Source of the DNA: Podarcis erhardii
Taxonomy: Eukaryota
NCBI GenBank assembly: GCA_964252035.1
Contig: OZ176203.1
DNA: 64,000 nt
Direction: 5' to 3' (one strand)
The notes below the pieces were generated by a model that was given only the letters and a program-made list of their open reading frames with translations, was not told where the DNA came from and did no database searches. The translations under genes were made by a program, and so were the position numbers. Below, piece by piece: positions 15,865 to 51,437 of this stretch (positions are counted from its first letter, which is position 1; each line of letters begins with the position of its first letter).

Positions 15865-16472
15865 GCATTGCATGATAAGCTCCTCTACCAAATTTCTACT
15901 CTATGCAAGGAGAAGAAGTTTAATAAAAAACAACAACAACACAGCCCTGTTTCCTCTTTATCTGTTGATGGGGCATTCTCAGATTTTACAGTCGTCATTT
16001 CATAAACAGAAAACACTTCTGCTAGGAAATCCCATGAAACCAATGAGGATCACATGTAATCATTTTGAATGTTTGTACATCACGGCACAGAAATATACAT
16101 GCACTGGGAAACTAAAGCCTGTCATAGCTTCCCAGGTTGTACATGCTGCAAAACACCAATGAGGTCAAGTCTCATTAGTGACAGTCCATAGGTGAAAACA
16201 AAATAAAAAAATTCCTTCCAGTAGCACCTTAAAGACCAACTAAGTTAGTTCTAGGTATGAGCTTTCGTGTGCATGCACACTTCTTCAGATACACTGAAAC
16301 AGAAGTCACCAGACCCTTCTAAATAGTGGGAAGGTGGGGAGGGGTATTACTCAGAAGGGTGGTGGGAATGGGTGATTGGCAGATAGCTGTGATGAGCCTG
16401 TTGACGACTCTTAACGACTGCAATAGGTCTTACAGGAAAAAGCAAGGGGTGAGAAGGTGAAAAATGGCTTTG

Positions 16473-16791
16473 TCATGTATAATGAGATAAGAATCCAATG
16501 TCTTTGTTAAGACCAGGTCTCTCCATGGTTTTAAGTTTGGTAATAAGTTGCAATTCAGCAGCTTCTCTTTCCAGTCTATTTCTGAAATTCCTTTGTAATA
16601 GAACAGCTACTTTGAGATCTTGTATAGAATGTCCTGGGAGATTGAAATGTTCTCCTACTGGTTTCTCTGTCTTGTGATTCCTGATGTCAGATTTATGTCC
16701 GTTTATCCTTTGGCGTAAGGTTTGGGCTGTTTGTCCAATATAGAGAGCTGAAGGACACTGTTGGCATTTGATGGCATACACAATGTTAGAC
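16473..16791 (-). pseudogene. Penelope GIY-YIG endonuclease C-terminal portion
   Basis: SNIVYAIKCQQCPSALYIGQT...RINGHKSDI...HFNLPGH...ERE...GLN*, no internal stops. Confidence 0.92.
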
Positions 16792-16869
16792 CAGTGTTTC
16801 CCAACCGGTGTTCCGCAGCACACTAGTGTGCCGCGACACGTTGCCTCGTGTGCCGCTTGGGAAACACTG

Positions 16870-17105
16870 CTCTAAGCGAGAGGGGACTCTGCTCAGGCTG
16901 CATCCGCCGTGCGCGAGGGAGGCGCTTCCTCTCGTGAGGGAGGCGAGAAGAAGGGAGGCGGGGCCGAGCAGGCGGATTGGCCCGGCGGCGGCCGTGACGT
17001 CACCCTGCGCGCGGCGGCAGATTCGAAACTCCTCAGGCGCAGGCGCGGCTGGAGCAGGAAGGCCGCTCTGCTTGAGAGGAAAGAGAGGGAGCCGCCGCCG
17101 CCCGG
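16870..17105 (+). promoter_or_regulatory. Captured CpG-rich cell-cycle-type promoter/5'UTR (CENPW-derived)
   Basis: GC box 16953-16965, ATTGG 16976-16980, TGACGTCA 16995-17002, GGCGG-caga-TTCGAA (CDE/CHR spacing) 17013-17027, NRF1-like 17037-17047; no ATG before 17106. Confidence 0.75.
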
Positions 17106-17168
17106 ATGAAGAACACCGTTCCGCGGAGCACCGTGAAGAAGCTGCTGAGCAAGCACAAGCCGCACTTG
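17106..17168 (+). pseudogene. CENPW: Captured N-terminal fragment of centromere protein W
   Basis: MKNTVPRSTVKKLLSKHKPHL aligns to recalled chicken CENP-W MRRTVPRGTLRKIIKKHKPHL; similarity stops abruptly after HL. Confidence 0.85.
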
Positions 17169-18068
17169 CCTCAGGGTCTTACTGCCCACCCGCCTCTGTT
17201 TCCTTGCTGTGCTTGCTCAAACGGAACAAAGAGCAGGGAAAGCCCCTCCCCTCCAGGCAAGCAGGCAGGAGGGAGAGAGAGAGAGAGAGAGAGAGAGCGT
17301 GCGAGCTGGCTGGCTTGGGTGAGTAGGTGAGGGAAAACTTTTGCCTTCCTTTCCTCCCTCCCCGTTATACCCCTCTCCTGCATTCTTAGCCAGCTGCTTC
17401 TCTGCACACCCCTCTCGTGCTCCTTGTCCGTTCTGTGTTTTTCCTTCCCTCCCCACTTAAAATGTGGTTTAAAAGCATGGATCCACATGGATCCTCAGGA
17501 TCTTTGCATTGGGTCACCCCAAATTCACCATCAGATCACATAGCATGTCCATGGCTACAGCCTGCCCCCCCAAAATCACACACCCACTGTTGCCTGGGGC
17601 TGCAATGGTGCAAAAACGTGGTTACAAAACATGGATCCACAGGGATTCTCAGGATTTTTGCATTGGGTCACCCCAAATTCACCATCAGATCACATGTCTG
17701 TGGCCACAGCATGAAGCACAAAAATGATACATCATTAATATTCACTGCCCACGGCGGCAGCCAATCGGCTGCCGCAAAGGGCGGGCCCTCACAGGTTCAC
17801 TGAATAAAGTATTTTATAATTTTTCATATTTCTGTTTACTTACTATTTCATAATAAAGTAATTATAAAATACTTTATTTGTGTTTATTTGATTCCTATTA
17901 AAGAGAGTTACTTTATATATAGTCAATATAGGCACAGAGTTAATTTTTTAAACATTTTCTAATGGTGGTGTGCCTCGAGATTTTTTTCATGAAACAAGTG
18001 TGCCTTTGCCCAAAAAAGGTTGGGAAACACTGTGTTAGACGATGAGCAATTAAATAGTCCCGAGATGG

Positions 18069-19905
18069 ACTTCCGGGTTGACGCGATCGGATTAATGGCG
18101 GATTCCCTCCGAGCTCCGGGGGGAATCGGCTCCGCTGAGAACGGGTCTTGCCGCGCCGGCGACGCGGGGACCCTTAGAAACCACAGGTGCGGATACCTGT
18201 GGACCTGGTGACTCGGTGGGCACCTTAAGCGCCCTCCTCGACAGTCAAAGAGCCTTTTTAAAGGCTGCGGAGAAGGTACGAGGAGTGGCGTGGTGCTGAG
18301 AGTAGACCGCTACCTCAGTGGAGTGAAGCCGCAAGCCATTGCCGGAGAGCGTCAACTTTCTTCCCGAAATTTGGACCGAAAGTAAACACCCCGTGAGTAA
18401 AGGAAATTCGATCTTTAAAAGAAATTTTATCCCTAATCTGGCGACCGGGGGGGACGTGCTAAAGGGAAGTCCGCACCCCCCCTCATACAGACAATTTAAA
18501 GCAAGGAGCGAAAGCCTAAGATCAGAGAGGAATAATCTCGTGTCTTTCGGAGATTGACAGAGACTTTATCAATTTACGTGAACAAGTCGTTTTTTTTTTC
18601 TAAGCTGTGCTGGAGGAAAGAGGAGAGTTTCAGAAAATTTCTGTGTACCCCCCCCCCCGAACCCGGGAGTACCCTGTAACAGCCTAGCGCGAAAGAACAG
18701 AGTTTTGACAGCTGTCAAGTGAGCTGTCAAACGGCAGGACTAAGAGAACTGTATTACTTTATATCTTTTGGATTTACAAAGTGTTTTATTCAACTAGAAG
18801 TGGTTGGAAACAAAGTAAATAACGAGCTAAAAAGACTGTTGGTACAGAACTTTAACAATGGCAATCCCTCTAGAGGGGACTGGAGACATTACAATGGCTG
18901 CAGAAGGAAAACTACTAGCAGAAATAGAAAGAGCCTTCTTTCTCGTGGGAACTTTACAAGAGCAAGCTATGATTATGGATAAACAGTTGATGACCTTGAT
19001 CTCTAAGACAAGTAATCCTGCTGATGGAAGGAAGGAATTGACTCTGGAAGATTCTGCAGCTGAACCAGAAAAGATATCTTTGGAGTTGGAGGAAAAACAG
19101 GTCGAAGGGGAGAAAGTACAGTTGTTAAACTTCTTACAGGACTCTTTGCAGCCAAGGAACAGAGAAGCCCTTTGGACTACAAGTCATGGAGAGAGAGAAG
19201 CAAGGGAGGAAGCCGCTGGACACAATAAAAGATGGGAAATTAAAAAAACAAAGAAATACAACTGGGGCTTCCTCCTCTTTTCTGGAATTGATGACTTGGG
19301 ACTTTGGGGACCTTTGGCAGAACCTTGGCACCAAGTCCTTCTAATTAGGATTGATCTGAGAAAGGATGAAGAGACCTCCCGAGACTTGAAGACCAATAAA
19401 ATGGATTACCAACAGAACAGGCAGGGAGAGACTGAAATAGACTTAAAGGCCTCTGACGTGAGAAATCCGGGCTAGGGATTTTAGAAGAGGACAGTTATTT
19501 TGGAAGGGACAGATACCTGGGCAGGGAGGGAAGGGGAAAAAGTAGAATTTAAAATTTTAGGATTTTTGGGTCTTTTTTTTATAATGTTGACTCATATTTT
19601 AATAAAAAAAGGGTAATTTTTGGTATAAGAATTTTGATTGATCTTAGAATAAGGATCTAATGTATATAAGTAAAAGATTATTGAATTGGGCCTAACAAAA
19701 AGAATCAAATTTAAACATAATAAGAATAGGATTGGGGAAGGAAATAAGAACTTGCTGAATTTAATATGGAAATTGGGATGTATGGGGGGGGGCGGGGGAA
19801 GTCAGGGAAAGAGGGTTATGAAAGCAAAGATATGAAACCATTTATATGTTTGTGTGTGTGTTGTCATAAAATGTGAAAATCCAATAATTTAAAAAAAAAA
19901 AAAAA
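18069..19905 (+). mobile_element. 1837-bp L1-related non-autonomous element (half-L1-like)
   Basis: 18-bp TSD taaatagtcccgagatgg (18051-18068, 19906-19923); (gg)acttccgg CpG-rich 5' end as in squamate L1s; one ORF; polyA at 19891-19905; no RT/EN. Confidence 0.8.
18858..19475 (+). CDS. 205-codon open ORF of the half-L1-like element (second ATG at 18894); putative ORF1 derivative
   Basis: Uninterrupted ORF, Glu/Lys-rich and helical-looking N-terminal half; I recognise no domain. Confidence 0.5.
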   Translation: MAIPLEGTGDITMAAEGKLLAEIERAFFLVGTLQEQAMIMDKQLMTLISKTSNPADGRKELTLEDSAAEPEKISLELEEKQVEGEKVQLLNFLQDSLQPRNREALWTTSHGEREAREEAAGHNKRWEIKKTKKYNWGFLLFSGIDDLGLWGPLAEPWHQVLLIRIDLRKDEETSRDLKTNKMDYQQNRQGETEIDLKASDVRNPG

Positions 19906-20748
19906 TAAATAGTCCCGAGATGGTATGTGTGATGTTGTTGGGGCCAGTAATGGTGTTGTCCGGGTGTATGTGGCAGCAAAGTTGGCATCTGGGTTTATTG
20001 CAGGCTCTGGTGCCAGTGTCCGTGTTAAGTCTGGTAGTAGTATTATTGTGGGTTAGGAGTTGTTTAAGATTGGGTGGCTGTCTGTAGGCAATGAAAGGTC
20101 TTCCTCCCAGAGCTTGAGAAAGAGAACTGTCATTGTCCAGGAGAGGTTGTAGATCTCTGATGATGCGTTGTACTGTTTTAACTTGGGAGCTGTATGTGAT
20201 GACTAGAGGTGTTCTGTTATTTTCTTTTTTGGGTCTGTCTTGCAGCAAGTTCTCTCTGGGTATCAGTCTGGCTCTGTTGATCTGTTGTCTAACTTCATCT
20301 GCTGGGTATTTTAGTTCTAAAAAGGTTTGCTGTAGATCTCTTAGGTGAGAGTCTCTGTCTGTAGAATTGGAACAGATGCGGCTGTAACGTAGTGCCTGGC
20401 TATATACAATGGACTGTTTGGTATGTTTGGGATGGTAGCTAGAGGCATGTAGATATGTTTGTCGGTCAGTTGGTTTACAGTATAAGGTGGTGTCTATGCG
20501 CCTATCCTGTATTTTTATAGTAGTGTCCAAAAAATGTATTTCTTGCATAGATTGATTCATTGTTAGGTTGATTGTGGGGTGAAAATCATTGAATTTCTGG
20601 TGGAAGGTGTCCAGGGTCTGTTGACCATGTGTCCAGATGATAAAAATATCGTCAATGTATCGCAGGTACAAGAGAGGTTTGAGTGGGTAGGAGTTTAGGA
20701 AACGTTGTTCTAAATCTGCCATGAAGATGTTGGCATACTGTGGGGCCA
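19906..20748 (-). pseudogene. Penelope reverse transcriptase C-terminal portion and linker
   Basis: APQYANIFM...YLRYIDDIFIIW...FLD...LYCKPTD...SSYHP...RICS; no stops; joins in frame to the GIY-YIG part once inserts are removed. Confidence 0.93.
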
Positions 20749-21128
20749 ACAGGAATTTTTTTATTTTGTTTTGACTATGGCAGACCAACACGGCTACCTA
20801 TCTATAACTAGTCCATAGGTGGATTTCAACTTCCCCACTATTTAAAGAAATGGGTAAAGTACGGTATGTACAATGTGAAGTAGCCTTCAGGCCAATGACC
20901 TGCCATTTGTTAGTTCTTAGCTAGACATGGAAAAGCTTCACTGCTTGTCTTGGGGAGTTTTGTCTGCTATGGCAACATTTTGAAAATCCCCTGATATGGT
21001 TGCAGTGGAACAACAGCCTCTTTCTTCATTATGCACCTGGGCTATACCCAAAATCCAAATAGTAGAGCATTGCGGTGGCAAAAAAGGCTATTGTGTATCT
21101 GTAACACATCTCTTTTTTCTATTCCTAG

Positions 21129-21210
21129 TTAAATGAAGGTCTCTGTTCCCCATGGACGTTCCAGGGCCTGACTCTGTGCATCATATGTATTGTTCTCTGT
21201 AGGATAAAGG
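21129..21210 (+). CDS. CD200: CD200 exon 2 (signal peptide)
   Basis: tcttttttctattcctag| 82 nt |gtaagt, phase 0 to 1; LNEGLCSPWTFQGLTLCIICIVLCRIKG. Confidence 0.88.
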
Positions 21211-22175
21211 GTAAGTCTAACATGATTAGTGCATTGGGGAAAGTGTAATGACTAGGCAAGGGTGGCTCAAGACATTTTGCCACCTGAGGCAATGGACAAC
21301 ATGGTACACACACACACTCTTGATATTGAGTAGCCAGCTGGACTGACTGCTGAATCCTAATTCAGTACTAGCAATGGGGCACTGCACTGTCCTGGAGGGA
21401 GGTCAGCACCATACTTGTAAGGCTGGAGCCCCACAGCTCTCAGCTCCAACAGTATGGACAGGGATATCAGGAGGAAGAGCTAAGGGCTGCCACCACCTCC
21501 CATCTTATGGCACCTGCAGCAGTCACCTCATTCTACCTAATGGTAGAGCCAGACCTTTGGCTATGAGCCAGTAGACCAGCAAGTGTGGCTGGCAGAGGGC
21601 TATGGAGAGTCTTGTGTTGCTGTGAGCAGGATGGGCTTCTATTTTGAGTCAAAGAAATGTATTTTTTTGGCATCTGTCTGTCTCAGGAGACAATGGAGGA
21701 GCACGCTTTGAGGGATGAAGTCAAACTGTTGGAAGGTTGCAGCGCCTGCTGTGGAGAGATATGTTTTGTTGCAGGTCAGGCAGATGAAGGCATCTGGTTG
21801 TGCTGCTACAAATGAACCATAGTGTTTCTTTTCTCTGTGCTCCTCCCAGTGGCCTTTCATCTTCTGGTCACTGCACAGACACACACAGAGCTGCCTTGTG
21901 AGGTTAAATAAGGTATGCAGCAACCCTCTTCCCCAAATTGTTCCTACCATGAATTTCAGAAAGGCTTCCTTTTCCCTCCACCTATCCAGTGAAAGGTATT
22001 AAAAAATGAAAGAAAAATATTTTGGAATTAGCAGCCCAGTTCTAATCTGTTCATGGTTGCTAGAAGTGCAGAACAGGAATTTTTGCATAAATAAATATTT
22101 TCCTTGGATCTAGACCAAGGGATTTGTAAGCATAAGATACGAGAGGTGATTATTAATTATTTTGTCTTGCCGCAG

Positions 22176-49826: not shown

Positions 49827-50935
49827 GATGATGATGCACCCTTCAAAACTAAGTCCCAGGGCAGGTTGCAACAATTTAATGCACATCATTAGAAACAGTT
49901 TAATGCACATGACAAACTTAGGTCTATTCATTTCAGTGGGTTTACTCTGAGCATAACTCAGTTGGAAACAAGCCCCTTTTCTAATAGCAGTCACACACTT
50001 CAGTGCAGATTATGCTGCCTCCCCAGGCTCACAGTGTCATCAAAAGAGTTCAGCTTGTTGTCTGTTCCAGCTCTACTGTTCTATGATTCTATGACCAAGA
50101 GAGCAGTGCTGGATTGGGGGTGTTTGTGCAGAAGGGGGCACATGCCCTTGTGTTAGTTTTGGAGTGGTGGCAAATTACAGGCTTTCTCATGAGCATGTCC
50201 CTGTGTGTGTGCCCCTATCCAACTTTGCCTTGCTCCAAAGGGGAAGAGAAATTCAAAGTATCAGTGTGGGGTGGCCTTTCTAAGCCTCCCATACCCTCCA
50301 TTCAGGCTCCACCTGAACCAGACGGATTCACGGAGGCTCAGGAAACCTGCTCCATGTTGAAAGGCTCAATTTTCAAGTACACGCCCCCATCTCCTTTGAA
50401 GCTCAGCTGGATTTCCAAGCCTCCCTTATGCTTTGGAGAGCTCACCTGCTGCTGATCCTTTCAATCTCCAATTTCAAATCACTCTCTTCATCCTTCTCAG
50501 CTGTTGCCACTGGGCTAAACATGCTGAGATGGAGAAGCGGGGCAGCAGTGCAGACCACTGTCGCCTATTGCAAAATTTGTAGATCCAGCATTGTAAGAGA
50601 GGCAGCGCGTGCAACATGGCTGGGACTTTGATGGGCCTTTTGACAGTTGGCTTTATATACTGTACTAAAGAGTGCTGCGCACAGATAAGAGGAAAGGGTT
50701 AGCCTGCAGCATGCCAGAGGTGCTTAGAGAAGAGGAAATAAAATCAATGTACAGTTGAAACCTTGACTGTGTTGATGTGCGTTTCTTGAGCAGAGCAAGA
50801 ACATAAACAAATGACCGCAGGGCTATAAGCACCAGGCAACTGACCAGGAGGCTGACTGAATTACCCATAGGCCTGTTGCTGCAAACAATGAATTGGAAAA
50901 AGGCCCTCATTCTCGGAATTGCTTATGATGCTTAC

Positions 50936-51229
50936 CTTGTACAATGACTTGTATTTCATGGCCTGAGAGTATGCTTTCCCCCATAGTAGCTCGACACTGA
51001 TAGCGTCCACTGTCATTCTTAGAAATAGGCAAAAATTGCAAAACAAAATCATGGCCTTTCCAAAGAATATTGTGTCTTTGTCCTTGAGGCAGAATTTCAC
51101 TGTTCCTGTACCAATTTATCGTAAGATTCTCTTGGCAATCCATTACTGGGCACTTTATACTGAATGAAACGCCAGCATTTATCGTGTAGTTGGTTCCCCT
51201 TCGGACAGAAATAGTGCAGTTTTCATTCC
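50936..51229 (-). CDS. BTLA: BTLA exon 2 (Ig domain)
   Basis: ttttttcttccag| 294 nt |gtaagc, phase 1-1; NENCTISVRRG...IKCPVMDC...NWY...FVLQFLPISKNDSGRYQCRA...SGHEIQVIVQ aligns with BTLA. Confidence 0.93.
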
Positions 51230-51437
51230 CTGGAAGAAAAAAGTGGGGTGGAAATTATGCCTGACACACCTCAGATATTTTTGCATTTTTAGCGATATCA
51301 TTTCATTGGTGTCTTGTTGGTTTTCCCAGCCATGCAATACCTTTAGATGAGAAGAGCTGATTGGCAAGCTAATATGATATAAAATATTGACATCAGTCAT
51401 CTGTTATTGGTTTAATCACAGTCAAGATATTTATAAA

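Follow-up and report, generated by a model that had tools for sequence, protein, structure and literature searches.

The DNA analyzed here, referred to as the window, is a 64-kb stretch from Podarcis erhardii that carries a CD200-like gene, the IgV and IgC exons of which match OX-2 glycoprotein best. Exon 2 of this gene lies on the plus strand at 21129-21210 in phase 0; the P. raffonei protein starts MRPK|LNEGLCSPWTFQGLTLCIICIVLCRIK|G. Another gene contributes an Ig-like exon on the minus strand (50910-51254), downstream of the CD200-like gene; it could be BTLA, the neighbor of CD200 in human. Intron 1 is occupied in part by a 4.6-kb block (16195-20809, minus strand), a 5'-truncated Penelope-like retroelement that is bordered by a 12-bp target site duplication (TSD), AGTCCATAGGTG, at 16183-16194 and 20810-20821. 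The minus-strand open reading frames (ORFs) of the block comprise a reverse-transcriptase fragment (weak RVT_1 match) and a GIY-YIG-like motif, and a terminal piece is inverted. Its Atlas neighbors combine HTH_animal, RVT_1 and GIY-YIG, which, judged by domain content, is a Penelope-like architecture. An Rfam scan of 16000-21400 gave no match and no hammerhead call at the Penelope-like ends. This retroelement hosts the subject of the present analysis, a 1241-bp non-autonomous hAT-type element at 16792-18032, located within intron 1 of the CD200-like gene in sense orientation.

The ends of the element are defined by terminal inverted repeats (TIRs) that agree at 15 of 15 positions. The 5' TIR, CAGTGTTTCCCAACC, is located at 16792-16806 on the plus strand and its exact reverse complement, again without mismatch, at 18018-18032 on the minus strand. 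CAGTGTTTCCCAACC opens with CAGTG, that is, with the YARNG pattern of short hAT TIRs. Directly outside the two TIRs, the 8-bp TSD TGTTAGAC is present at 16784-16791 on the left and at 18033-18040 on the right. The motif GTGTGCC occurs 13 times in the 64-kb window, with four occurrences no more than 65 bp from the element ends; this is the subterminal-repeat pattern expected of hAT elements. When up to two mismatches were allowed, the sole further TIR match in the 64 kb was an internal inverted copy within the element (16855-16869, minus strand, one mismatch). No autonomous hAT transposon with matching TIRs was found in the window or in the fetched loci. Likewise, neither the window nor the two loci from relatives that were compared with it (CENPW of P. 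muralis, CD200 of P. raffonei) yielded additional copies of the element or of its TIR; at about 90 kb of non-overlapping sequence in total, this sample is too small for a judgment.

Contigs (Logan) of three DNA runs and one RNA run were placed on positions 16000-21400. Run X15 (organism G) agrees with the unique flanks without a difference and represents the window species, and run X1 (organism A), with a flank difference of about 1.2%, a sister species. Run X5 (organism D) differs by about 2.7% in the flanks and shows P. muralis-specific letters as well as a left-edge CENPW deletion, and is therefore P. muralis or very close to it. In contigs of all three species, position 16783 is joined directly to 18033, with 1249 bases skipped and eight letters that fit on either side. 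These contigs are paralogous empty sites, namely other copies of the host repeat without the element. They carry a single TGTTAGAC and confirm the insertion and its TSD. The perfect TIRs and the 8-bp TSD that had been read from the sequence around 16792-18032 are likewise confirmed.

The element is built from three parts. The first 78 bp (16792-16869, plus strand) form a MITE-like module with the 5' TIR, subterminal GTGTGCC motifs and, at its inner end, the inverted TIR copy. The element body (17170-18017, plus strand) contains a (GA)n tract (17261-17298), two repeats of approximately 154 bp (17459-17731) and an AT-rich 3' part with GTGTGCC motifs. Both non-captured parts (16792-16869 and approximately 17200-18032) belong to a very abundant hAT family: their summed word depth amounts to about 1e5-1e6 in the three species, compared to about 50-100 for single-copy sequence. 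Other family members part from the window at 16855/16856, where the contigs show a loose end and a joint from 16856 to 18010. The latter represents a short family form of about 100 bp. The body additionally includes a GC-rich hairpin with 16-nt arms and a CCAAT motif (17747-17782). This hairpin is missing from most other family members, the contigs of which diverge after 17733 in all runs. Contigs of other family members also reveal different GC-rich inserts. In P. muralis, for example, DNA contigs (22 in number) and RNA contigs show members of the hAT family with a different GC-rich sequence and a TGACGTCA motif directly before 17960, which may be another captured promoter-like piece.

Between the module and the body lies a 300-bp segment (16870-17169, plus strand) with a GC content of 68% and a CpG observed/expected ratio of 0.99, compared to 0.17-0.22 in the flanks. 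To determine its identity by homology, the CENPW loci of P. muralis (L001), P. lilfordi (L003), P. raffonei (L004) and Lacerta agilis (L005) were fetched. The segment is 96.6-96.9% identical to CENPW of the three Podarcis species and 92.6% identical to that of Lacerta agilis; the P. muralis locus aligns with 16883-17169 at 95.9% over 290 bp (E 1e-134). It encompasses 236 bp of upstream region and 5' UTR, followed by the ATG with its 21 codons and one further nucleotide. The ORF that starts at 17106 opens with MKNTVPRSTVKKLLSKHKPHL and continues with 53 unrelated residues. Among PDB chains, the 21-residue peptide (17106-17168) matched chicken CENP-W only (residues 2-21 on 2-21, E 2e-4), and it is 100% identical to the N-terminus of CENP-W from Podarcis muralis. 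The sequence-only reading, which had taken about 300 bp at 16870-17169 for host CENPW 5' DNA and the peptide for the CENP-W N-terminus, is thus borne out on both counts, and the CENPW 5' match on which it depended was found in the loci of the Podarcis relatives.

Both borders of the captured segment were located by comparison with these parental loci. On the left, position 16870, which directly follows the internal TIR copy, is exactly where the homology to P. lilfordi and P. raffonei sets in. The parental upstream sequence, GCCGACC|CTCTAAGCGAGAGGGGACTC, aligns with the window from 16870 onward, and in P. lilfordi, P. raffonei and Lacerta it reads ...GCCGACC|CTCTAAGCGAGAG(G/A)GGACTCTG. Upstream of CENPW, P. 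muralis has lost 21 bp between GGAC repeats (L001:9750-9775 versus L003/L004:2760-2790) and with them the CTCTAAGC site, at which the MITE postulated below would have been located in the donor lineage. On the right, the border at 17169/17170 is devoid of a TIR. As had been predicted, the true locus runs on into ...DLL and intron 1: in all parental loci, exon 1 extends past 17169 with CGC ATG CGC GCC AAC ACC GAC CTG CTG|GTGAGG, that is, RMRANTDLL and then the donor.

These borders bear on where the segment comes from. The true CENPW locus and a CENPW retrocopy were considered as candidates and rejected. CENPW resides on other chromosome records than the site of the element in P. muralis, P. raffonei and P. 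lilfordi, and a retrocopy is excluded because the capture ends 27 nt short of the exon-1 donor and takes in non-transcribed upstream DNA. A genuine 5' end of CENPW, or a pseudogene of it, flanked by unrelated transposon fragments by chance would account for the sequence identity taken alone. The flanks, in turn, are intron 1 of the CD200-like gene and collinear with P. raffonei, and TSD and empty sites bound the unit as a whole, which makes this explanation next to impossible. The transfer went from CENPW to the transposon: conservation of the N-terminus extends to chicken, and in four lacertid assemblies no transposable elements (TEs) occupy the parental CENPW site. TIR-like sites were absent from the 24 kb of the P. 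muralis CENPW locus L001.

Four changes that are common to the family set the captured piece apart from every parent: two CpG>CpA substitutions and one GA>AG pair at adjacent bases. Two of these four family-wide changes being CpG>CpA hints, on the basis of the substitution type, at some germline methylation, though the CpG observed/expected ratio is still close to 1. The identity to the parents of about 97% is similar to the divergence between species. Position 17103 is G in all other copies, as in the parents, and the C is private to the window copy.

The two unequal borders are also relevant to a composite transposition, in which CENPW would have had a MITE on its upstream side and another family member on its downstream side, both excised jointly by their outer TIRs with the DNA between them carried along. 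Such an event would place the internal TIR end directly against CENPW upstream DNA at CTCTAAGC, a hAT-like target, just as observed, and alternative transposition by pairs of Ac/Ds ends is documented in maize (PMC1592236). At the right border (17170), however, a TIR is missing, and none of the four parental loci has the sequence of 17170-18032 in CENPW exon 1 or intron 1. A second element would have to lie truncated within the first exon of an essential gene, or else another rearrangement would be needed, and we consider this route unlikely.

Contig depth suggests that the captured segment is present in multiple copies. In the window species, two X15 contigs reach depths of 2052 (16808-16993) and 2069 (16995-17117), compared to 94-98 in flanking single-copy contigs. 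In the sister species, a 354-nt X1 contig covering 16871-17222 has a depth of 569 versus 18.5 in the single-copy flank. These high-depth contigs cross the capture borders at 16869/16870 or 17169/17170 and contain one difference each from the window. The chimera accordingly stands at about 21x the single-copy word depth in the window species and about 31x in the sister species, where assembler word depth serves as a proxy for copy number and GC bias may cause underestimates. This suggests roughly 20-30 copies of the CENPW-bearing element in each of the two related species. Because contigs of the capture junctions reach this depth in two species, the enclosed CENPW DNA is supported as behaving like a Pack-type family and not like one-off filler. 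The expectation of further TIR-flanked copies that form a family is supported by depth only. In the P. muralis DNA run X5, the sole contig over the captured part (16883-17169, depth 26.7 versus 49 in the flanks, nine differences) is the true CENPW locus. No captured copies were found among the contigs of this run, a data type that reveals presence and not absence.

The lineage history of the host block was examined in the same data. Contigs of organisms A and D join 16182/16181 straight to 20810/20809 and lack the block at the orthologous site. Collinearity with the window, at 92-98%, extends to the P. raffonei assembly (L002), where a single AGTCCATAGGTG is found at the block position. The block is specific to the window lineage, because it is absent in organisms A and D and in P. 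raffonei. Also inside the block, an A-tailed element is nested at approximately 18051-19905, together with a duplication, AAATAGTCCCGAGATGG, about 17 bp long. Relative to single-copy sequence, the depth of its interior is about 65-150x in the window species, about 30-100x in the sister species and next to none in P. muralis; the element looks like a second family that expanded in this lineage only. The block represents either three very recent, successive insertions or a composite that was copied in as one unit. If it was copied in as a unit, TGTTAGAC had been duplicated at an earlier site, and the hAT element may have reached its present site as a passenger of the retroelement and not by its own transposition there.

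The extra depth could in principle stem from such copying: a single capture in a resident hAT copy, by the transposition-independent gap filling proposed for single-copy Pack-TIRs (Tan et al. 2021), with the surrounding Penelope-like element or a larger segment then duplicated. Closely related Penelope-like copies are numerous among the contigs, and the 4.6-kb block with its three nested elements may have been inserted as a unit, with a perfect 12-bp TSD, at a site that is unoccupied in three relatives. Against this, host-repeat copies without the hAT element at the exact site (joint from 16783 to 18033) are found in three species, and the sister species carries the captured piece at about 31x yet has no block at the corresponding position. 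Copying of the retroelement or duplication of a larger segment is thus very unlikely as the source of the amplification.

The reading we prefer, and consider probable, is that the element in the window belongs to a young Pack-type hAT family with multiple copies, which captured CENPW DNA by a template switch from a MITE on the promoter side and then spread. According to this scenario, an ancestor shared by the window species and its sister would have carried a 78-bp MITE of the abundant hAT family at CTCTAAGC, a site 236 bp ahead of the CENPW start codon. In the four other lacertid assemblies, the postulated MITE is absent from the CENPW site. The inferred earlier target resembles the present one in that TA occupies positions 4-5 of both TGTTAGAC (TGT-TA-GAC) and CTCTAAGC (CTC-TA-AGC), a comparison that comprises two sites only. 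A longer family member would then have been under repair synthesis, after excision or at a stalled fork, and its nascent strand would have taken the promoter-side MITE as an ectopic template. Synthesis would have run out via the TIR of the MITE into 300 bp of CENPW, comprising promoter, 5' UTR and 21 codons, before the nascent strand returned to internal sequence of the longer member. With both outer TIRs retained, the product would have been movable by hAT transposase in trans and could have reached roughly 20-30 copies, with transposition as the probable means of amplification. The window copy would finally have landed at TGTTAGAC in the Penelope-like retroelement, in intron 1 of the CD200-like gene and in sense orientation. 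hAT elements often insert near the 5' ends of genes, and for this reason a read-out from a MITE would favor the capture of promoters and first exons. A model for capture after a stalled fork is available with FoSTeST (PMC8277862).

The captured piece includes a set of promoter-like motifs (16976-17027, plus strand): ATTGG at 16976-16980, the cAMP-response-element-like (CRE) motif TGACGTCA at 16995-17002, and GGCGG-4 nt-TTCGAA at 17013-17027. The CRE and the GGCGG-CAGA-TTCGAA block are invariant across the four parental loci (Lacerta and Podarcis) and the captured piece. ATTGG, the complement of a CCAAT box, is the same in the captured copy, P. lilfordi and P. raffonei, and reads ATTAG in the CENPW promoter of P. 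muralis. In CDE/CHR promoters, a CHR (TTYGAA) with a GC-rich CDE located 4 nt upstream, together with CCAAT, leads to transcription in G2/M phase. The RNA run X24 (P. muralis, without the CENPW subfamily) has a depth of 0 over 16905-17085 and is uninformative on the captured promoter.

Starting from the captured ATG, a chimeric ORF of 74 codons plus stop (17106-17330, plus strand) joins the 21 CENP-W residues to 53 residues from transposon DNA. No Pfam domain was found in the 74 residues, and a comparison with a collection of 5.8 billion protein sequences returned nothing at E <= 1 besides real CENP-W. The histone fold of CENP-W (PF15510) is not part of the ORF, which holds residues 1-21 only and is a fragment, not a gene copy. 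Because it is without the histone fold, the ORF cannot act as CENP-W. Towards its end, a consensus-like splice donor, GTGAGT, is located at 17319-17324 (plus strand), in phase 0 to the captured ATG with 71 codons upstream. This putative donor, recognized from its letters, is phase-matched (phase 0) to exon 2 of the CD200-like gene at 21129. A chimeric first exon, in which the captured ATG and the donor at 17319 are spliced to CD200-like exon 2, is possible on paper. Any promoter or coding activity of the captured piece is putative, as is the spread of a cell-cycle promoter that the sequence-only reading had proposed.

Elements of this kind have been described in animals. In the largest animal survey, which covered 100 genomes (81 vertebrates; Tan et al. 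2021), 370 Pack-TIRs were identified, 208 of which have hAT ends (PMC8277862). The words 'lizard' and 'Anolis' do not appear in the main text of that study (PMC8277862). Only 4 of the 370 were multicopy, three from frog and one from alligator, and these tend to hold GC-rich DNA; for single-copy Pack-TIRs, the authors proposed transposition-independent gap filling (PMC8277862). The sequence-only reading had called host capture much less reported in vertebrates than in plants. This holds for multicopy cases, which are rare; the kind as such had already been described, including the 208 hAT cases (PMC8277862). A non-TE interior with a parental copy elsewhere, by which Pack-TIRs are recognized, was found here with the loci of three other Podarcis assemblies as parental copies. 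The closest likeness is to Pack-hAT-N8_XT of Xenopus tropicalis, which carries a 291-bp piece of the CAPSL 5' UTR and is present in 3 copies (PMC8277862). Both are non-autonomous hAT elements with both termini and a TSD, about 300 bp of a GC-rich gene 5' end, an identifiable parent and, for the lizard element as judged by depth, more than one copy. The lizard element, in contrast, has a depth that suggests about 20-30 copies in each of two species, includes promoter and start codon, and has a capture border that is flush with a TIR. It thus fits the known Pack-TIR/Pack-hAT kind and stands out by its apparent copy number, by the promoter with start codon and by the TIR-flush border. Full-text literature searches retrieved no description of a CENPW capture or of Pack-type elements in lacertids.

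Outside of vertebrates, comparable systems are known from plants and insects. New gene structures in plants stem to a large extent from gene fragments captured by DNA transposons, and Pack-MULEs favor GC-rich 5' ends of genes. The Pack-MULEs of rice and other grasses resemble the lizard element in having TIRs and in carrying and multiplying fragments of host genes, but they are Mutator elements of plants with a 9-10-bp TSD and long TIRs, number in the thousands and often hold several fragments each (PMC5861414). Among hAT elements, Ds-type deletion derivatives with filler DNA have gained foreign DNA during repair synthesis, and the maize Ac/Ds systems are not known to amplify a promoter-bearing fragment to tens of copies. 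The chimeric genes formed by alternative transposition of maize Ac/Ds are a further instance of foreign DNA gained by a hAT system through aberrant use of its ends, in a plant (PMC1592236).

The TIR itself has counterparts in insects, among them Rhodnius, which is a hub of horizontal transposon transfer to tetrapods. The hAT2_NA and hAT1_NA MITEs of Bombyx, Rhodnius, Heliconius and Manduca have an 8-bp TSD with TA at positions 4-5 and a TIR of CGGTGTTTCCCAAC or CAGTGTTTCCCAAC (PMC3845634). Within the 14-nt TIR, the only part compared, the lizard sequence is identical to hAT2_NA of Manduca sexta over all 14 nt and one base off those of Bombyx, Rhodnius and Heliconius (PMC3845634). These MITEs differ from the lizard element in their insect hosts and in that no capture has been reported for them (PMC3845634). 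Common descent or a horizontal origin of the lizard hAT family may be considered on the basis of this short match.

A more far-reaching proposal is that an active hAT MITE family in some Podarcis repeatedly captures CpG-island promoters and first exons via promoter-adjacent MITEs and amplifies them to tens of copies, with the CENPW subfamily scattering a working cell-cycle promoter with ATG and donor that could provide new first exons, for example to the CD200-like gene. We put this forward tentatively, as the less probable outcome. The CENPW element in itself, with about 20-30 near-identical copies by depth in two close species and none detected in P. muralis, represents a recent and datable capture. 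Its border points to a concrete mechanism, the read-out from a promoter-side MITE, and its copies would constitute a natural experiment in which a CpG-island cell-cycle promoter with a start codon has been placed in many genomic contexts. If the wider proposal is true, repeated promoter capture by Podarcis hAT MITEs would be a vertebrate counterpart of the Pack-MULEs.
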